A DNA stretch of 58,117 nt, filler included, from Platydemus manokwari (Eukaryota), in NCBI GenBank assembly GCA_037951405.1. It is 5 parts of 5 records of this genome, joined end to end, with 100 filler letters (N's around TTAATTAATTAA, not from the genome) between each part and the next. Parts side by side here need not be neighbours in the genome. Positions count along the whole stretch, not along the records: positions 35,259 to 47,931 come from JBBMOY010017792.1; 4 more parts are not named here. One strand, given 5' to 3'. Each line of letters begins with the position of its first letter. Within the stretch, counting starts at the first letter, position 1. The translations under genes and the position numbers were made by a program. The notes under the pieces were generated by a model, which was not told the DNA's origin, made no database searches, and saw only the letters and a list, made by a program, of their open reading frames with translations. Below are positions 35,259-47,931 of the stretch, piece by piece.

Positions 35259-35423
35259 AAATGCAATCAATTAATTGAGGAATATTATAAATATAATTTC
35301 TGGAACCATATGGAATAATAGTAATTAAAGACATATGTTATCCATATTTCCTTTTAATGGTTTTCCGTTATAATGTTTTATTTAATATTTATAATTTTCG
35401 TACTCAATCATTGTTAAAGGATC

Positions 35424-38277
35424 ATGAAATTTATAACATTTTCCATTGCGTTAATTTGTCTGGGAATAAACGAGATATTACCTGTTCACGGGACACATCA
35501 TTGGAAATCTTATGAAAGATATGATAACTACCAATTAGATGATCTGCATTTGATGCATGATTGGGAATGTTGGTATAAGGATTACTATTTAAAAGGTAAA
35601 TTTCCATGAGATAAAAACAATTTGACTTTAGTTTTCAGTTGATCGTTGTCCATCGGAAACTTTGAAATCGAAAGAAAAGATTCCATGTAAGCAATTTCGT
35701 AAATGCAAACGTCGTTGTCGATTGATTTCTGGTATTGAAAAGTGTCGAATTCTCTGTGCTAAGATGAAAAGCAAAATCTCGAAATTTATAAAGGTAATTT
35801 ATAAGGTGAATCAAGATGGAAAATGTCGAGATTCAATTATTTGTGTTTACAAAACCTTGTGTAATCTTGACTGGCCTTCACAGATATACCAAGGTTGCTA
35901 TTATACAAATGACTTTTACGAATGGTGGATAGATCATAAAAAACATTATGAAACTCCAACATTAGTCGATCGGGTCACATTGATTAAACGCAGCAAAATC
36001 TATGATTGTATGAACATTAATAATAATCCCCCTCCAGTAGATCCATTATTAGAAAATACGGTTAAAATCAAAACAACTCGTGGAAGAATGCTCCACCAAA
36101 TCGGTGAGTTATGGTTTCGTGTGAAATTCGTCAAAGATGATATGCTCTACTATATTGGTAAAATGTGGGTTTCTGTTAAATATAGTAAAAATCATCAATA
36201 CTTGAAAATCGGAGATAGATGGTTGAGAATCGTAATTTCAAAATATCAGTTGTACTGCCAGATTCACGATTCATGGATCCCTTTAAAAATATCATTTGGT
36301 GTAACTTATATCAAATTAGGTGAAAGATGGTTGGAATTTTTTATTAAAGGAAAGAAATTCTTTTACAAATTTGGTAGTAAATGGTTGGAAATACGCATTC
36401 TTGATCATGCCGTCTATCATCGGATGGACGAAATATGGTATGAAGTTCAAATAAAGAAAAATAGCGATTTGGTTAAGATAGGGCGTGGTTTTAGGAGAAT
36501 TATTATTGTTTACGATCAAACATTCATTAAATTAGGTAGCCGCTGGTTTGAAATGAAATTGAAAACTGAAAAATATTATATTAAATGGGATAAAATATGG
36601 ATTGAAATAGAATTTGATGAAGATTATATTTTTACATTTATCAATGAAGAACGATATCGACTGAGATTTACAGAATTTTCGATTTGTATACAAATCAGAG
36701 GAAAATGGATTCAGGTTGAAGCTAAGGATCAGAGTCTATTCTTTTACATTGATAAAGCATGGCTCAATCTTTTGGTGGAGAAAAATGATCTATTTGTTCG
36801 AGAGAATGGTGAGTTAACTAGAGTGAAATTCAATGATGAAGATGATCTTCTTTATAAATCGTATTATACTAATCAATCTCGATTTGCAAGAAAAATGCAA
36901 ATGGAACCTGATAAACGATTAGCCACGAATGATTTTTACAAAATCGAAAATTCTCGCAACTATAAACTCATCGGTGGTTATTGGTTTCCATTCAATTATA
37001 CAAATGGGGAATTTCTGTATTTGTTATCAGATGAATGGGTCAAAATGAAAGTCCAAGATGACAAGTGGTTTTATTATGATTTTGATCAATGGATCGAAAT
37101 GAGTATCATTGGTGAAACGGAATTCAATAAGATAAGCGGTCATTGGTTGGAAGTAAAAAGAGAAAAAGATGAATTGTTATATTTGGATTCAAATAGGTGG
37201 CACACAATAAAACTTATCGGCAGACTGGTTTGTTTAAAATTTAAAGGTGAATGGAAATTTTTAAATATCGTTAATGGACAAAAATTTATCCGCTTGGGTA
37301 ACCAGTTTGATCAGCTGCGATTCCATAATACCGATGAGAAAATATTTTATCTAAAGATGGGCAAGAGATGGTTTACTTTAATGTTCCAAGAGAACCAGTA
37401 TTTGATTCAAATCAACAAAGCTTGGATAAGAATTGAATTCTTTAGTCATCGATCATTGCAATTGGTGTTCAACGATGTATGGAGATCAGTGACATTCCGA
37501 GATGATAATGTTTATATAAGGAATGGCAACTGTTGGTTAGAAATGATTTACGAGGACAAGATCATTTTCTTGAAAATTGGTGACACTTATAAAGAAGCAG
37601 AAGTATCATCAAAAGGATACTTTCGCATACGTATAGATAAGAATTTCTATACACTAATCGAAAAAAATACTATTCGATTAAATAATAGACTCATAAAAAT
37701 TTCCTATATTGATGGTAAATTACACATGTATATCAATAATAATTGGCTACCATTGAGGATTACCAAGGATAAAATATTGGTGAAAATAGTTGATTCTTGG
37801 ATCGAAAGCCAAATCAATACCAACGGAGAGACTTTTACTGTGATATTGGACAAACAGAAAATGGAATTGACTTTCGAAAATGGAATATTATGTGAGCTCT
37901 ACTTACAACTGAATGTTCCAGTGAACATTCGATTTAGAAAATTATACTACAATTTTGATGGAAAATGGGTGAGAATTATTGCCAAAGACGATCAACGATA
38001 CTTGAAAATCAATAAAAAGTTGATCAGACTCGGTAAGGATTTTTTGAGACGGAAAATTAAAAAATACAAACTCCAATCAATGTTGAAATGTATGTCATTC
38101 ACATTGCGAAAAAGATATAGAAAAACTGATAAGACTGATAATTATGATCATTATTGGGATGAAGAGGAGACTGAGAACTCTCGACAAGAAAAAAATCCAC
38201 TCAAAAGTCTTAGACGAAAACAGGTCTATTTTATCCGGAAATATAAAAAATATTATAGAGAGAAAATATTCAATTAA
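35424..38277 (+). CDS. secreted ~936-aa protein: signal peptide, Cys-rich domain, about 34 x 18-aa Trp/aromatic repeats, basic tail (2 exons)
   Basis: A GT-AG intron at 35596-35638 (43 nt, phase 1) joins the MKFITFSIALICLG.. exon in frame to the 871-aa ORF; the repeat periodicity is visible in the translation. Confidence 0.88.
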
Positions 38278-38642
38278 GAATTGGAAAAATGAACATTGAT
38301 ATTCGAATATAAAAAACTTATGACGATTTATATTTAGATTTTAATAGTTCTTAATTATTTATTTAATTTTCATGGTTAAAGATAAGATTTTTCTTTTATT
38401 AACTGTTACATATTTTGACGGTGTGCGTATCAAAATAAAAATTATGTTTTGGTTAATATTTTCTTCTAACTTTTTTATTTGTACCGTTATTCATGTTTGT
38501 AAATACTAATTCCTAATACGAAAGAGGATACTTTCCAATAGCATTCATATAAGATATTTTAAAATGGGATACTTTTAAATAATTTTTATACTACTTGGAT
38601 TCTATTGATATTTAATAAATAAATCATGCATATATACACGAT

Positions 38643-39700
38643 ATTAATATTCTACTAGTGGATGAAAAGAACCAATATAAGTATCTTGGAGTTTCGTTTG
38701 GTTCCCAAAAGAGGAAAGATATTGATGACATTTCAAGGTGATTTGTAACACGGACTTACATCTGAGCCAAAAGTTAAATGCCTTTGAAGTGTTTATACAC
38801 TCCAGACTGCCGTTTCAACTTCAAAACTTAGATGTCAGTATTCTATCATTTACCTTTTCACACAAGGGACAAATGGGTGATAAGCCCAGGGATCTCGGGT
38901 TTGATAAAAAGATCAGATGGTTAGTTAAGAAAGTGATAAGAGTTAGCTTTTTCTATCATCCCATAATGATTTTTTGGATATCTGTAAGAAGTTGGGTGGT
39001 CTTGGACTTATGCTAGAAAAGATAGAGTATTATATTATATATATTATATATTATATTATATTATATATTGACAAAGTGCTAGGGTATGTTAGTTAATAGT
39101 GTTTTACTATCTAAGGTTTCAGTGTGAGTCTTGAACTCAATTTTGTTGTCACCACGGGTTTGGCACTTCATAGTCTTGGGCCGAAATAACCTTTACTGCT
39201 GAATTTCCAGTCTTCCCGTGTAATGCAGGGTAAAGATTTGAATTGCTGTTGATGCGGCACTTCAGTGAAATCGATGTCTTCGTACTCAACCATTGCATTG
39301 GTAACCCTTATAGGACGACGTTTAAGCATAATGCAGTGCTTTCAATTTTGGTTAAAAGACTTGTTACTTTAGGATATAATGTCGACGTCGACTGAGATGA
39401 AGACTTACTTACGTCCTGACTTAATAATCCGAACTTTGGGTAGTAAAAACATGAAAAAACATACCTACCTTGTAGATTTTAAGGTGCCACTTGATAAGGA
39501 AGAAAAATTTAGGAATAACTTGGAGAGAAATTACCGAAAGTATAAAGGCCTGGCAGTTCAAATGACTAGGTAATCCAGAACTTCAATGAGTGTTCATCTG
39601 TTAAACGTAGGATTTTTAGAATTATGGGATTCATAGAATGATAGAGTCTTGAGACGATAAGAGTTAGATAGTAAGATTTCACTAAACATTTAAGAAAATT
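38643..39700 (+). mobile_element. non-LTR retrotransposon remnant with a restriction-like endonuclease (R2/NeSL-type), 3' part
   Basis: YKYLGV, LSQKLNAFEVFIHSRLPFQL, FDKKIR..VKK, FFY....GGLGL, degenerate CCHC, HNAV, LRPDLI....YLVDFKVP, RKYK; internal deletion and a (TATAT)n tract. Confidence 0.8.
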
Positions 39701-40128
39701 ATTTTTAATTATTCTCCGTATTCTTGAGTTATTTTTAATGCAAATTATTCTTATTATATATTTTTTAAAATTTACATCAATCTATTTTTGAAATTAAAAA
39801 AACAGCATTATCAGTATATAACGTATCAATTTTAATTAAAATTCACAAGTACATATTCTAATCAAATAATGAAAGCATGTCTAGTGAATAAAAAAGTGTG
39901 ATATCAAATAAAATTTAGAGAAAATCTATGATGTGACTGAAACGGTATATCAAGGTCTATAAGCTAATTGATCGAATAATTAAATTTATTATATACAAAG
40001 GATTGAAACACATACTTTGAATATAAATACTGTTTATCAAATAAACTGAAAATTCAGGATTAACTATTAAAATTTTAAAATCGATTTAAAATGTTGGATT
40101 AATATAATCTGATAAATGCATATCATTA

Positions 40129-41073
40129 ATGAATACCATCAATTCTAATGATGAAAAATTGAAAATCATTATTAATAATGAATGGAAGCTATTAAAACGA
40201 ATTGGAAATGGATCTTTTGGTGAGATTTATTCATGTATAAATATCATCACTGGTCAAGAAGCGGCTGCAAAATTAGTAAAAAACAAAACCAAATTTATCC
40301 AACAACTTCAAATTGAACGAAAAGCTTTAGAATTGTTGAGAGATGGTGAAGGAATTGTTAAAGTATTTTTGGGGGAAAAAATTTGTATTGATAATCGATT
40401 TGTAGCATTGATCATGGATCATTTGGGGCCTAGTTTGGAAGATTTGAGAATCTATTGTGATGGGAAATTTTCATTGAAAACAACAATTATGTTGGCAGAT
40501 CAAATGATTCATCGAATCGAATATTTGCACAGTCGATATTTGATTCATCGAGACATCAAACCGGAAAATTTTCTCATGGGCATTGGCAAAGAATTTAACA
40601 TTGTGTACATCATTGATTTTGGATTAGCTAAACAATATATTCATCCAAAATCCAAGAAACATATACCATTTAGAGAATTTCGTAGCCTTATTGGAACAGC
40701 GAAATATTGTAGTATTAATGCACATTGCGGTTATGAGCAGAGTCGTCGTGATGATTTGGAATCGTTAGGCTATACTTTATTGTATTTTTTAAATGGATCT
40801 TTGCCTTGGGAGAATATAGAAAACTTAAACAAATTCGAACGATTCCATTTGATTCATCATGCTAAATTGAACATCAAATTGGAAAGATTCTGTGAAAACA
40901 TTCCAGTCGAATTTATGACTTATATAAGCTATTGTAAAGGTTTGAAATATCAACAACATCCAAATTATGATTACTTAAGACAGATTCTTAGGAATCTGTT
41001 TGAGAAATTTAATCTGAAATATGATTTTCAATTCGATTGGATTACTAAAAATTCATACAATCGAATTTTATAA
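40129..41073 (+). CDS. casein kinase 1 family Ser/Thr kinase, intronless, with almost no C-terminal tail
   Basis: IGNGSFGEIY, LGPSLEDL, FSLKT..MLADQM, HRDIKPENFL, IDFGLAK, GTAKYCSINAH, EQSRRDDLESLGY. Confidence 0.96.
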   Translation: MNTINSNDEKLKIIINNEWKLLKRIGNGSFGEIYSCINIITGQEAAAKLVKNKTKFIQQLQIERKALELLRDGEGIVKVFLGEKICIDNRFVALIMDHLGPSLEDLRIYCDGKFSLKTTIMLADQMIHRIEYLHSRYLIHRDIKPENFLMGIGKEFNIVYIIDFGLAKQYIHPKSKKHIPFREFRSLIGTAKYCSINAHCGYEQSRRDDLESLGYTLLYFLNGSLPWENIENLNKFERFHLIHHAKLNIKLERFCENIPVEFMTYISYCKGLKYQQHPNYDYLRQILRNLFEKFNLKYDFQFDWITKNSYNRIL

Positions 41074-43639
41074 AATCTATTTCATCCAGTTATAAATGTA
41101 AACGATTTTAATGCATTTTACTAAACTGAACATGTTTTTGACCACACCGTATAAACAATTAAACAAAAATTGTTCAAAAATGCTTTTCTAATTTATTACA
41201 TAATCATTATCACTTTAAGATAACGTTAAAATCATTTCTTTTATATAGATATTTTAACTATACGTATTCAAGCCTGAGTCCACTAGTTTTTCAATTTAAA
41301 TACGCCTGTTGAGTGTAGACTGATTTTCTTACCGACTGCACACCCCTGATTTTAACTATCATCACTGAATGGAATTTAATATTTTGAAATATTATTATAT
41401 TTTTTAAGATTCTTCGAATATACATTATCTGTATTTGATATCATTTGATAACGTCATTTATTCTATTTCTATTCGCAAATCAACCCAGTGACAATCAACA
41501 AAGAAATTACTTTACTGAAAGTAAATTGATGAGGCCGTTAAAATTAAATGAGTCACTGTTGTCAGAGATATGTCATTCTTTCGAAAACAACCTATTAGTC
41601 TAGCTCTCGCGTACACTTCAACTATTCGAATAATTTAATACAAAATTTATAATTCGCTATTGGCTCCCACCTTGTTTATCAACAGCACATTGATAATTAT
41701 CAAAAATATATCTTCGTCTCGACACTTCTACAACCTCACAAGCATCTAGCTGCTAAACTAATATTCCATAACAGACATTTTCGTTAAATATGGTCTATTT
41801 TACTCTACACGACCTTACTTCTACGTAAGAATCTAAAAATACATCTGAAAATCCAAGTTAAAATTGAAAAAAATAATAATTTTCATATCGGAAATATCTA
41901 TCATTTGAGTCATAATAATTGTCAGAATCAAAGAATTTGGAAATATTTACGAAAAATTTCAAAGAAAAAAGCAAGGTATTACTTTATCATTTTTTAATTT
42001 GAAATGATTGAAGGGACATATATTGTCGGTATATTGGGAACCATTTTAAAAAGTATTTGATATTATGCCTCTCCAAAAATATTTTTTTCTAAAACTTTTT
42101 AAATTCATTTAGAAATTTTTCGAATACCAAAACATCCAAATTGACTTCAGACACACAATTTACGTATACTCAGCATTTTTATAACAAAGTACAGACGTTC
42201 TGATATGCATATAGTGAGCTGACAGATGAGCAAACTTTACCATAGCATGCTTTTCCAATGATACACCCTCATTCAGATCAGAATTTGAATTTTTATGACC
42301 AGACTAGCAAACTGGATTTATAGTTTATCATAATCATTTATTAGAATTAGTGATGGTTAATGTAGACAGCACGACATTGGTTAGTCTAATCTGCAAGTTG
42401 ACTTTTCAATTTAGCTTTTAGTTAGTGAAACAAAATTTAATAGACTTATTTAATATTCTGATTTTCGGTCACTTTATGCAAGTCATATCATTCATAAAGG
42501 CACACGGGGGTATCAAAATACTCTGACAGGAACTTTTTAGTAATATAATCTGAAAAGCTGAAAAGTTTTTTACATGGAAAAATTGTCTCTTTATATTAAT
42601 AGAATCGCTGTTACAAAACTGCAACGGAGAAGATAACGATAATAGTTCAATTTCCATCACGTTGAAGGATTTTAACTTCTTGAAATTAGAGCTCCTTGGT
42701 ATGGCGTCAGCTCAGATAGTGTATTGTGCATTGCACCTAAATTGAGACCAGATGATTGCAATTTAAAGTAACTTTATGAAATAATCAATATTTATTTATT
42801 CTGTACAGATACTATTGTCTCATTGGTTCTATTTCATACTAAACTTGTTGGTGTCCTGCTCACTGATTTCTACCATAGAATTCCTGGAATATATTCTATA
42901 ATTCCATACACACGAGTTTTTATTTATTTTTTTCAAAAACAAAGTATGTCACATATTTTTCGTTACCATCATATTCTATATCATCTGCACAGTAAACCTA
43001 AGACAGGTGAAATGCAAGGAATGTAGCTGTAATCTGTCAGTCTTTTAACAGCAACCATATTAAAGAGTAAATTAAAGAGCATTTTTATCAGTAATGTTTC
43101 ATGTTATAGCAAACTATTTATAAAAGCCAGCAACATGTTCAACAGTGTGACGTTTCCCAACAAGCAATCAACATAAGGCTGTAAATACCAGATTCCAGTT
43201 AGAATGATTTATTTTTGTTAATGGTCCAACAACTCACATCAATAGTCTGGATATTTTATTTTTGATTACTTCCGGTTTCTCATTGCACATCTGATCAGCT
43301 ACAATGTTGATTGTACAGTGAATGAGCAAAAGTAAGTTTTGTTCTGATGATCTGTATTTCATCATCTTCTACAATCTCGTAATCCAGTGAGTAATGGCAA
43401 CTTTCATGATCGCATAAACTTTTTTGCATGCATTCTTGTTTCACTGGCAGGACTCAGTAGCTTTAAATACAAAATTCTTGCTTAACTTTTCAATCAAACA
43501 CTTAACTTCAAATTTTACCATTGTAATTAACTATCTAAATTACTGATCAAAAAATTTAAGCAATTAAAAATTTTAGCTATTAAACTATTAATTAATCCTT
43601 AATTCCCGCAACCCTAATAAGTAATAACAAATTTTCCAC

Positions 43640-44490
43640 CAAGCTTCACATTTAGAAAGAAATAAGCACTGGGGTTTAAAAAGTATTAAGTCTTTTTGCT
43701 TTTAAATTATTATTAGTTTGGAATTACAGTTTTAAAAAGGAAATCTATTGAATATTTTCTTTTGACATTACCACAATTCAAGGAGTCAAACAAAAAACCC
43801 TATACTTTATTGGATAACAAAATACAAGAAATGGTGCAAACACAATTATACAACCACATAGATGTGCCAATAAAATTCAGAAGAAATTGAAGTGACCCAA
43901 TTGGCATTCTTATCGCAATAAGAAAACAATTTGTTTTTATACAAGACATTTTTTAATCCAAATTATCATTCTCGGTTATCACTATTTTTTGCTATTTATT
44001 TTTTATCTCAGCTTTTGCATCATTTTATAATGGATTATTTAATATTTTCCAGTCCATATCACCATAATACAAATGGATTGATTGGCCGACAATTTAGAAC
44101 GATAAAAGACTATATAAATGCGACGGTGAAGGATAGGTAGCACACAAACTTGGTTTCAATATTACCAGAAATCGAATATACATTGAAGGCGATAGTCTAA
44201 AAAACGATTGATGTCAGTCCGGCAGAAGTTATATTTGGAAGGAAGATAGACAGATAACGTTGGTATGGCAACAACAGAGTAGATCGAGAAGAAATTTAAC
44301 GAAACATTGAGGATAAACAAAAAAGAGAAACAGTTGAAATAACAAAACGCAAATTTAAGATAGGTGACAAGATATTAGTAAAACAGGAAGTACGAAATTA
44401 AGATCAAGAAAGATATGATGGTCCGTACAAAGTAATAGGAAAAATTATGAAAGAGGTTACTAATTACAAGATAAAAATGGTAAACCGTAG
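43640..44490 (+). mobile_element. Ty3/gypsy integrase remnant
   Basis: FSSPYHHNTNGLIGRQFRTIKD, LPEIEY, SPAEVIFGR, FKIGDKILVK, YDGPYKVI; multiple stops. Confidence 0.85.
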
Positions 44491-45363
44491 GTTATAGACT
44501 TTATTTGTCATTCTCGTACTAATCAGTACGACTGACAAAATAACATAGATACAATCACAGCTAATACTCGTACTACTCAAAAACGTAGCCAAAACCTGGT
44601 TTCCAACTGGTAGTTTTGCCAAAAATAAACACTTTTCATGATTTCATCTTGCACAATATGAAATTGATTCATTTAAATAAATTGTTCTGGAACCTTCTAT
44701 TAATATGTATTTTTGGATTTAACTAAATTACTAATGATTTTATTTTAGAATTTTTCATAGAATATTTATTCAAAATTTTTGATTATTTTTAAAAACTTTA
44801 TTTTTTTACATACTCGACAATATGCTATTTAAAATTATAATCTATAGGATGAAAAACTGAATCTGATAGTGTCGGAATAATGTATTCTAAAAGTGTAGTG
44901 TCTTTAAGTGGAATTGGATTAATAGACCTCCATTCCTCACATGATCCAGTCAAATCCACCAAGAGGCCTGACCATTGACGAATATCCGTGAGTTTTGAAC
45001 CAAAATTTGTTCATAACTTTAATTTTAGTCATACAGTTAAAGATGAAAAAAGATAACTTAATATCAATTAATTAAATGAAATTAATAATAAACTGATCTT
45101 AATAGTCAAAATTTCAATAAAATAACAGTGATAACTAAAATTAAAAAATGAGATTAATTGAAAATTTATTATTATATAATTATCAATATAATCATTAATT
45201 TAATTGATTCTGGACATGTTTTTTTAATTAATCAGAAGTAATTAGCAAAATTTTTCTTATTAATATTAGAGTGGATTTGATAAAGTTCCGAAATTCTAAA
45301 TAGTGAGTCGATTTAAATTCTGTCATAGATTGCAGCTATATTTCTTTATTGGCTGTGAAAATA

Positions 45364-45573
45364 ATGTCTAATAAATCAAAATTACAGTTTGGGATAATAT
45401 TTAATAATCTCATCACAAACGATTATTATCGTTTTCAAATCAATAACAATAATGACGGTGATGAACCCGTGGAAGCTGAAACACCAGTAGAAGAAGAAGC
45501 GGTTCCTGAACCACCGAAAGTAGAAGCTCCGAAAGAGGAACCGAAAAAGGGTGGATGTTGTATTATTTCTTAA
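45364..45573 (+). CDS. small acidic/Pro-rich CaaX protein, or the last exon of a longer gene
   Basis: ..EPVEAETPVEEEAVPEPPKVEAPKEEPKKGGCCIIS*, a GC-richer coding-like patch ending in CaaX with an adjacent Cys; AATAAA at about 45642. Confidence 0.6.
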   Translation: MSNKSKLQFGIIFNNLITNDYYRFQINNNNDGDEPVEAETPVEEEAVPEPPKVEAPKEEPKKGGCCIIS

Positions 45574-46169
45574 CTATTATCTTAACAGTAGTAATTCATT
45601 TTTAATTTTTTTTTATCATGAAAAATTGAAATTTCCTTTAGAATAAAAAATATTAATAGCTTTTTATTTGATTAGAACATGTTATTATTTCTGATATTTG
45701 ATATTCTATATTGATTATCTTAAAAAAATGTTCCACAATTTGAAAAGAAATAATTTAAGAATTGTAATACGTTGAGGTGGGTTTAATATTTTCATGTATG
45801 CCAAGTAAAACTAGAGCTTGAGTTCTTGGAAATGTCTTTAGGAACATTGATATGAAAATCAAAAATAATTTTACAGCACAGACTAGCTTTATAAAACTAT
45901 AAAAATTGTAGACATCGTTTGGTCTAAATCAGTTAAATATTTGAGTCTTTAAATGAATTTATTATTATTTATGTTATTATTATATGAATTATAATAATTA
46001 TTGTCAAGTACTTATTATAAAATCCAATTATCTAAGGATTGTAGTTATGCATATTAGTTTGATGAAAATTCAAATAATAATATTAATATTATTTTTCTCA
46101 AATAAAAATTTTATAAGTTTTAAAGAAATGTTTAATTGCTATTGCTAGACATATCGTTTCACCCAGTAA

Positions 46170-47400
46170 AAGACTTAGAAGAGAGACAGTATGTTGATAT
46201 CAATTATTTTTTTCTGAAGCTCTGAACAGTTTGCATACGTTTTGTTCTTTCTTTACTTGTCTTATTTTTTCGATAATCAAAATGGCAAGAAATTTCTCAA
46301 GATCCTTGAGCATTTTAAAACAGTTGACTGAGATTAAAGTAAATATTTTAATAGGAAACGATAATATGATACCATCGAAATTAAGAAATCTATTTGGAAA
46401 TGAATCGCAAAAATATAAAACCAAGCCTTATTTAAAATTTTTAAACAATAATTATAAGAAGTAATCAACTATTAAACATATAATTACACATTATAATTCT
46501 GATATTAGTCGTAAATTAATTGCATCAAATAAAATTTCCAATTTAATGACTCAAAATTGGAAACCGTGTAACATCAGAGAAAAACTTATGTAAAATGCGG
46601 TGTCAGTTGTTAATTTAAACAATGATAAATAAAGAAGATAGATAAATTGTTTAAGTTACAAAAAGAACAACCTCTTAGAGAACGGAATATAAAGAAGTTA
46701 TTCTAATAAATTAATGAATAGTTCATGTCAAATAACGAAGCAATATAACGAGATTCGAAAGAAAATACCAACTTATACAGGAAGTGATTTTTATAAAAAA
46801 AAATCAATAAGATTCAGCAGATGAAACAATTTTTGTGAAACATCTCTTTACACAATATCATATATTGTGTTATTAGTGTGACAGCTTCAATAAGGGATTT
46901 TTGGGATTTTTTAAAAAAATGTAAACAAGATCTGGTTAAAATTCATTACGCTATTCACCGGTAGCATGTACTGACAAAACCTTTAGGACATCGAATCGCA
47001 TGGCAAATCAATAGTTATAAAACTTGTATATTATCTTAAATTAAATATTTGGTAAAATCGGCTCATTTATTAACTTTGAGAATTTTCATGAATACGAAGG
47101 TTTATGTGCTACAGTTTGAATTAGAAAAGCATGCCATAATTATACATGGAAGTAGTCTCGAAGAATTTTTGAAAAATAGTACAACTGGAAATAATATGTT
47201 TTCAGTAAAGAATGACATATTTTATTTATCAAATATATTTGAGAAGTTAAATTCTCTTGACAATAAATTATCTGGAAAGAATTCAAATCAGATATTTAAT
47301 TACAACACCATTGAATTTACTTAAACTTCATTGGGACAACTTAAACGCAGTGAATATTTTCAATTTTCCAACATTTCCCAATATTGTTTACATAGCGAGG
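46170..47400 (+). mobile_element. hAT (Buster/ZBED5-like) transposase remnant
   Basis: NDNMIPSKLRNL, LIASNKISNL..KP.NIREKL, IHYAIHR, DIFYLSNIFEKLNSLDNKLSGK. Confidence 0.75.
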
Positions 47401-47931
47401 ATCCCCAGAAACATATTGTTTGGTTGCGGTAGATGTTAATTTTGCTGTTCAAATAACTCAACACCGTGAGTCCCTTTATTATTTTATATGTATATATCAA
47501 CAACACTCGAAAAATTACCAAAAACTTTTATTGAAATAACACAATCAAATTAAATACAACAGTTTAACTCAATGCAGTTTAGCTCACACAAAGATTGTAT
47601 AAAAAACAAATTGAGTATGGTTATCTCACAGAGACCGTGAGAACCAAAAAAATTTCCTTATAATTTTATTATAGATATTATTATGTGTGCTCCAAAGGTG
47701 GATCCTTTAGAGTCAAAAAATGATTTGGGATTGATTTACAACTAATAGTTTATTATTACTTTTTCGTAACTATTTCTGGTATAGAAGAGTATTCAAAACA
47801 ATTTATTTGTCGATGAATTCAAAACCTTTGATTACTAAAGTTAACCGAATTTTTTGAGAGTGAATTGTGATGGAAATCCATCAGCTTATATAGATGCTGA
47901 GATTCGGTACTTTGTACCTAGGAATTTCCAT

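Follow-up and report, generated by a model that had tools for sequence, protein, structure and literature searches.

The genome of the flatworm Platydemus manokwari (GenBank assembly GCA_037951405.1) contains a predicted two-exon gene that encodes a protein with a long array of 18-residue repeats. The gene was analyzed in a window of 58,117 nucleotides (nt), the whole stretch of DNA under study, which joins five parts of five genomic records end to end. The analysis was confined to the piece at positions 35259–47931 of the window (record JBBMOY010017792.1), which has a GC content of 30%. Exon 1 (35424–35595, + strand) starts with an ATG at 35424 and consists of 57 codons and one additional base up to a GT donor. 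A predicted phase 1 intron of 43 nt (35596–35638, + strand) follows with the form GTAAAT...TTTTCAG, in which the donor GT is located at 35596 and the acceptor AG at 35638 is preceded by TTTTC; the reading frames of the two exons join across this intron. Exon 2 (35639–38277, + strand) contributes 878 sense codons from position 35641 and terminates in a TAA stop codon (38275–38277). The predicted product of ∼935 residues consists of a signal peptide-like start, a Cys-rich N-terminal domain, two arrays of 14 and 20 repeat units and a basic C-terminal tail. The same domain order had been described in an earlier sequence-only reading of this DNA.

The frame of exon 2 is open over 879 codons (35641–38277), an event with a chance probability of ∼3e-29 at the stop codon frequency of the piece, in which stop codons account for 7.2% of all triplets. 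A mechanical list of open reading frames (ORFs) represents this region as a single long frame at 35662–38277 (+ strand) that is open back to 35632. The list omits exon 1 at 35424, in agreement with the sequence-only reading that the ORF track misses the signal peptide exon. The exon 2 frame is closed by a TAG codon at 35629–35631, 10 nt upstream of the acceptor, and has no upstream start codon. Retention of the intron would place a stop codon five codons past the end of exon 1. The two-exon model is coherent because the frames join and because exon 2 alone is devoid of an upstream start. In a hydropathy analysis, the N-terminus encoded by exon 1 displays a lysine at position 2 and 13 hydrophobic residues with the core FITFSIALICLGI. 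Small residues at the −3 and −1 positions define candidate cleavage sites after G14 or G23. By hydropathy and the cleavage rule, exon 1 thus begins with the elements of a signal peptide, namely, an N-terminal basic residue, a hydrophobic core whose length falls within the usual 8–15 residues and small residues at −3 and −1. The signal-like start is followed by 34 polar and aromatic residues, including one cysteine, and cleavage after G23 would leave 12 cysteines in the mature part. The product is probably secreted, judging from these sequence features.

Exon 2 is dominated by a repeat with a period of 18 residues. In a BLOSUM autocorrelation of the exon 2 translation against 300 shuffles, lag 18 generates the highest signal (z 13.4), accompanied by harmonics at lags 36, 54, 72 and 90 (z 9.4, 8.1, 6.3 and 5.2, respectively). 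A weaker half-period signal is observed at lags 9, 27 and 63 (z 4.3 at lag 9). Successive tryptophans are separated by exactly 18 residues in 14 of 29 spacings and by 36 residues in two more. A profile from Trp-anchored units recovered 25 copies, the last of which is a weak partial match, and addition of the degenerate units that lack Trp gives 34 units in total: 14 units, a 38-residue linker and 20 units. Repeat block 1 (36088–36843, + strand; exon 2 residues 150–401) comprises 14 units of exactly 18 residues each, and its register is intact with zero indels. Repeat block 2 (36958–38049, + strand; exon 2 residues 440–803) comprises 20 units, most of which contain 18 residues and a few 16–21, and its later units are more degenerate. 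The consensus unit reads Φ, F/Y, Φ, K, I, G/N/D, D/K/G, x and W at positions 1–9, where Φ is a hydrophobic residue, and Φ, E/R, Φ, K/R and I/F at positions 10–14, followed by polar, turn-forming residues at positions 15–18. Trp occupies position 9 in 24 of the 34 units. These results reproduce the near-constant 18-residue period and the two blocks of about 14 and 20 units that the sequence-only reading had reported, and the five example units quoted there were all found as written.

The repeat units are highly diverged from one another. Amino acid identity between units averages 15% in register and 7.5% out of register, and nucleotide identity averages 38.5%, with a maximum of 65%, whereas composition would give 29%. 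At the DNA level, Tandem Repeats Finder did not detect the array. Among the three codon positions, conservation across units is highest at position 2 (identity 0.46 versus 0.345 in a shifted control), followed by position 1 (0.37 versus 0.30), and position 3 is near random (0.33 versus 0.28). The conserved Gly, Ile, Lys, Phe and Tyr residues are encoded by several synonymous codons. The position 2 bias, the use of synonymous codons and the indel-free register indicate that the repeats are old and that their physicochemical pattern and unit length have been maintained. This sequence pattern supports protein-level constraint on the repeat units, as had been suggested earlier from the persistence of an open frame across units that differ strongly in their DNA.

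The structure of the repeat was predicted using AlphaFold2. In this and every other fold prediction or search, the query was a single exon, namely exon 2 (35641–38274, + strand) or parts thereof, or exon 1 alone. The target consisted of the first seven units (36088–36465), and the alignment (A2) contained five non-overlapping rows of ∼7 units each, all taken from the repeats of the protein itself; a six-unit alignment (A3) performed worse than A2 and was set aside. The seven-unit model has a mean predicted local distance difference test score (pLDDT) of 90.3 and a predicted template modeling score (pTM) of 0.79, and the five models range from 79 to 90 in pLDDT. All five models contain 14 β-strands of alternately 6 and 8 residues that are connected by two-residue turns, yielding a 6-2-8-2 arrangement per unit. 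The turns are located at positions 6–7 (G/N/D and D/K/G) and 16–17 (K/D and D/N), and the composition at both sites is that required of tight hairpins. The units are thus predicted to form tight β-hairpins that are joined into a continuous antiparallel β-meander ribbon. Hydrophobic residues constitute a fraction of 0.74–0.91 at positions 1, 3, 5, 10, 12 and 14, which places them on a single, purely aliphatic face. The opposite face displays F/Y2 and W9 together with K4, E/R11 and K/R13. Based on the strand boundaries of the model, Y2, E11, K4′ and W9′ would be arranged as a cross-strand ladder that recurs along the ribbon, in which a Trp appears on every second strand at a spacing of roughly 1 nm. 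The sequence-only reading had proposed a β-hairpin repeat solenoid or fiber. The hairpin is recovered in the model, with a pLDDT of 90 and two-residue turns, and the solenoid is replaced by a continuous antiparallel meander.

The two repeat blocks are flanked and separated by non-repeat segments. The Cys-rich, basic N-terminal domain (35641–36087, + strand; 149 residues, isoelectric point (pI) 9.5) contains 11 cysteines, all within exon 2 residues 3–123, and has no family match. A phmmer search of Protein Data Bank (PDB) sequences returned only one row, a weak local match of 37 residues between this domain (35731–35841; exon 2 residues 31–67) and fractalkine (CX3CL1) with an E value of 0.27 and 12 bits. 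In this weak alignment, the CX3C motif and a third cysteine line up. With its E value of 0.27, the match is not significant and was taken as a chance event. The linker between the blocks (36844–36957, + strand; 38 residues) contains an NQS sequon and a basic R-F-A-R-K motif. The C-terminal tail (38050–38274, + strand; 75 residues, pI 10.0) is rich in Lys (20%), Arg (12%) and Tyr (11%) and contains several dibasic sites; a tail of 75 open codons has a chance probability of ∼0.004 at the measured stop codon frequency. The protein as a whole has a pI of 9.5. The R-F-A-R-K motif in the linker and the dibasic sites in the tail make proteolytic release of separate blocks conceivable. A donor-like GGTAAG site is also present at ∼38031, and an alternative 3′ exon structure is possible.

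Relatives of the protein were sought in sequence and structure libraries. The whole protein produced two noise rows in Pfam at E ≤ 1, and five repeat segments searched separately at E ≤ 10 matched no repeat family; the CW_binding_1, choline-binding, glucan-binding and CROP profiles were among those unmatched at both thresholds. NCBIfam gave no match, and a two-unit profile had zero matches to PDB sequences at E ≤ 10. Nothing significant was obtained in an ESM Atlas feature search with the whole protein or block 1, in a word-index homolog search with the whole protein or the N-terminal domain, or in a metagenome contig scan. An exhaustive phmmer search of 1,835,955,588 cluster representatives yielded 0 proteins at E ≤ 0.001, and a literature search found no description of such a repeat. 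These searches, including the Pfam search that the sequence-only reading had named as a check, are in line with its statement that the family was not recognized. The protein itself was not matched, which places the source genome outside these libraries, and the absence of relatives consequently holds for the sampled species. The sampled species include many parasitic flatworms, Macrostomum and the Logan run SRR33002330, which contains a contig protein 70% identical to the kinase encoded next to the repeat gene (see below).

Structure comparisons gave a similar outcome. In a Foldseek search against the PDB, no match was obtained at E ≤ 0.001. The first rows contain Pce/CbpE (E 0.017), CbpF, CbpJ, the CROP domains of TcdB and TcdA, and alternansucrase, followed by Kelch propellers, and the rows overall show template modeling (TM) scores of 0.13–0.24 and root-mean-square deviations (rmsd) above 11 Å. 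A Foldseek-independent structural search of 48,161 chains had a best Z score of 3.5, with rows covering only half of the model, and the aligner used quotes a background of Z 7–8 for unmatched models. Structural realignment of the top 1000 Foldseek entries reached a best Z score of 4.3 over 40 residues. The best ESM Atlas fold match, with a TM score of 0.48, involves a segment of a bacterial protein of 847 residues, and BFVD contained nothing significant, with a viral MORN protein at E 0.52. The combination of AlphaFold and Foldseek, which had also been put forward beforehand as a check, thus yielded a hairpin meander with no significant PDB match. The aromatic β-hairpin unit is of a known kind, and neither the sequence family nor the predicted arrangement of units has a described counterpart. 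We rate the repeat protein as a new family of β-hairpin repeat proteins, a class that is itself known.

The repeat gene displays the properties of a resident flatworm gene. A public genomic DNA run contains a 3419-nt contig that is identical to the window, intron included, with a depth of 14.9, and no paralog at ≥80% identity (i.e. at least 80%) is visible in that run. The depth is at the same level as that of the neighboring kinase gene (13.1), and the relative synonymous codon usage of the two genes is correlated with r = 0.89. The neighbor (40129–41073, + strand) is an intronless gene for a casein kinase 1 (CK1)-like protein kinase of 314 residues (Pfam Pkinase, E 1.5e-29). Its best named relatives are flatworm CK1 (CK1 alpha) proteins with 52–55% identity from Trichobilharzia, Paragonimus, Protopolystoma, Echinostoma, Schistocephalus, Mesocestoides and Taenia, and the Macrostomum protein is 49% identical. 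The assignment of the host to the flatworms from sequence is based on this kinase gene. Codon usage, matching depth, the short spliceosomal-type intron and the flatworm CK1 neighbor all point to a native flatworm gene that is neither contamination nor a recent transfer, and the locus is single-copy. Horizontal transfer from bacteria was ruled out on four grounds: the gene has an intron, its codon usage resembles that of the host, its depth matches that of its neighbor, and zero bacterial relatives were obtained.

The two genes are separated by a high-copy repeat (38560–39710), for which the summed contig depth is 280–2070 compared with ∼15 in the flanks. Many diverged copies with internal deletions are observed in the genomic DNA run, and the repeat carries short ORF fragments (e.g. 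39379–39573) that have no Pfam match. The high-copy repeat is probably a degraded transposable element. A transposon origin of the repeat gene itself was ruled out because its locus is single-copy, in contrast to the depth of 300–2000 in the adjacent element. Two further ORFs were observed downstream of the kinase gene. An ORF fragment at 43931–44140 (+ strand) contains HHNTNGLIGRQFRTIK, in which visual inspection suggests a likeness to the terminal part of an integrase core of retroviral type, with no significant Pfam match. The last part of a short ORF at 45349–45573 (+ strand) encodes a Glu/Pro/Lys-rich stretch and then GGCCIIS, which resembles a CaaX-type lipidation signal; this ORF has no Pfam match and may be the final exon of another gene.

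The locus is probably best explained as a native flatworm gene for an orphan hairpin-meander repeat protein, and a role of this protein as an extracellular scaffold is a more tentative proposal. An extracellular scaffold is the preferred functional reading on account of the signal peptide and the 12-Cys N-terminal part. With ∼6 aliphatic side chains from each unit pointing to the same side, a ribbon of such a length (28 or 40 strands) would be insoluble as a single layer, and the aliphatic face must therefore be covered. The aliphatic faces could be buried by packing of block 1 on block 2, between molecules or by curling of the ribbon, and their pairing would produce a two-layer ribbon or fiber. 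Each hairpin would then contribute one Trp to the outer face, with Lys, Glu and Tyr beside it. This aromatic and cationic face may bind anionic or glycan material together with the basic tail, and the overall pI of 9.5 and the tail pI of 10 make the surface suited to anionic glycans or surfaces. Composition and geometry allow the tentative proposal that the protein is a scaffold within a secretory product, with a structural, adhesive or glycan-binding role. A more specific version, which we consider rather unlikely in its entirety, is that the protein is the founding member of an undescribed extracellular repeat fold, in which the 14- and 20-hairpin blocks would pair by way of their aliphatic faces with an overhang, and the protein would polymerize into a two-layer fiber with a regular Trp/Lys ladder, a structural or adhesive material that assembles itself in flatworm secretory granules.

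Several observations weigh against the preferred explanation as a whole. The sole public run that holds the locus is genomic DNA, and the intron and expression of the gene are presumptive. The lack of relatives applies only to sampled species, given a source genome outside the protein libraries, and with homologs absent there is no cross-species conservation that points to function. The confident model covers 7 of the 34 units and was built on five rows of the protein's own repeats, and a single-sequence AlphaFold2 run on the full exon 2 protein failed, with a mean pLDDT of 30, although this low-confidence model nevertheless contains meander-like strands. The functional reading draws only on composition and geometry. 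If the open frame were not a functional gene but an unexpressed, recently dead or mis-modeled fragment, the lack of RNA evidence, of a homolog and of an annotated protein in any library would be expected. This is nonetheless highly improbable in view of the length of the open frame, the retention of the amino acid pattern and exact register with near-random third positions, and the position of the upstream start codon and signal peptide, from which exon 2 is separated by exactly one short intron that preserves the frame. The hairpin meander might instead be an artifact of the internal-repeat alignment, and the true structure could be, for example, a two-sided parallel β-solenoid with an 18-residue coil per unit or a largely disordered chain. 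The origin of all five alignment rows in the same protein and the failed single-sequence run are consistent with an artifact, and an 18-residue coil of two strands would likewise fit the half-period signal observed at lag 9. Nevertheless, the G/N/D-rich two-residue turns at both strand ends favor tight hairpins, the five models agree with one another and the hydrophobic alternation fits an amphipathic antiparallel sheet, so that an artifact has a low probability.

Two other alternatives retain the hairpins and assign them a different role. In one of them, lipid or another hydrophobic cargo would be carried in a groove or lumen walled by the aliphatic face, and the curled meander would operate as an extracellular scaffold for lipid binding or transfer. 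All six aliphatic positions of each unit lie on one face, the pTM suggests a defined, compact shape for the seven units, and the first 66 residues of the model align only to lipocalin and fatty acid-binding protein (FABP) barrels (Z 2.4–2.6, rmsd ∼5 Å). These structural scores do not rise above noise, the searches matched no lipid-binding family, and the basic tail and Trp/Lys face favor a polyanion or glycan ligand, all of which makes a lipid carrier doubtful. The other alternative is a diverged member of a known family of aromatic hairpin repeats (choline- or glucan-binding repeats, CROP or MORN) that would function as a multivalent ligand-binding solenoid or sheet. Choline- and glucan-binding repeats and CROPs share with the flatworm protein short aromatic β-hairpins of ∼20 residues, long tandem arrays and occurrence in secreted proteins, and Pce/CbpE, CbpF, CbpJ, CROPs and alternansucrase head the Foldseek rows. 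The matches to these repeats are confined to E values of 0.017–0.4, TM scores of 0.13–0.21 and rmsd values of 11–18 Å, and the Cpl-1 choline-binding module gives Z scores of 2.3–2.4. No Pfam repeat family was matched at E ≤ 10, the unit profile is unmatched in PDB sequences, and the period is 18 rather than 20–23 residues. In the choline- and glucan-binding repeats and CROPs, each hairpin is followed by a loop of 8–10 residues, whereas the flatworm protein is predicted to have tight turns on both sides, and the two-residue turns in the model would provide none of the inter-hairpin loops from which choline sites are built. The modeled flatworm array would also form a continuous sheet in contrast to the superhelix of three hairpins per turn in these known repeats. 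Choline- and glucan-binding repeats and CROPs are bacterial or phage elements, whereas the flatworm protein is from an animal. Membership in one of these known families is accordingly improbable, and the description of the repeat as reminiscent of but distinct from choline/glucan-binding repeats in the sequence-only reading stands, given top Foldseek rows with non-significant E values of 0.017–0.3 and TM scores of no more than 0.24.

If the gene is expressed, its product would enlarge the small set of β-hairpin repeat proteins by a new family and perhaps also by a new architecture. It would be an animal protein that keeps an unusually strict register of 18 residues and has zero relatives in 1.84 billion sequence clusters. 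Long amphipathic β-meander ribbons with a regular aromatic ladder are of potential interest in two respects, as natural materials that self-assemble or adhere and as scaffolds in protein design. In flatworm biology, the sequence makes the protein a candidate component of secreted material such as mucus, adhesive, rhabdite-like granules or eggshell, the molecular make-up of which is, to our knowledge, poorly known. The interest of this example is tempered by the frequent occurrence of orphan repeat proteins in flatworms and by its unproven expression.

Among known systems other than the choline- and glucan-binding repeats, MORN proteins are similar by description. In MORN structures, hairpins that carry conserved Gly and aromatic residues are joined in tandem into one elongated antiparallel sheet, and such a sheet of tandem hairpins is also predicted for the flatworm protein. 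The MORN unit has 23 residues with a YxGxWxxGxxxGxG signature and resides in intracellular, membrane-associated proteins. The flatworm repeat differs in its period of 18 residues, has no Pfam MORN match and retrieved no MORN chain among the PDB structural matches listed. Kelch and other β-propellers are built from four-strand blades of ∼44–50 residues; in the flatworm protein, the lag 36 signal is lower than that of lag 18, Pfam gives no propeller match, and the Kelch rows in Foldseek have E values of 0.16–0.5 and TM scores of at most 0.2. RHS/YD repeats were matched in neither Pfam nor NCBIfam, and no YD-shell chain occurs among the structural rows. Within the tandem-repeat proteins, a β-hairpin repeat class has been defined (Roche et al. 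2018, J Struct Biol 201:130, cited in PMC7778985), to which the flatworm protein belongs by its unit type, with no member family matched in the searches made here. A tight-hairpin meander is also shared with the single-layer sheet of OspA/OspB and its engineered peptide self-assembly mimics, with noise-level Z scores of 2.1–2.4. In OspA, the sheet is short and non-repetitive, with two hydrophilic faces and globular caps, whereas the flatworm arrays would extend over 28 and 40 strands and have one fully aliphatic face.

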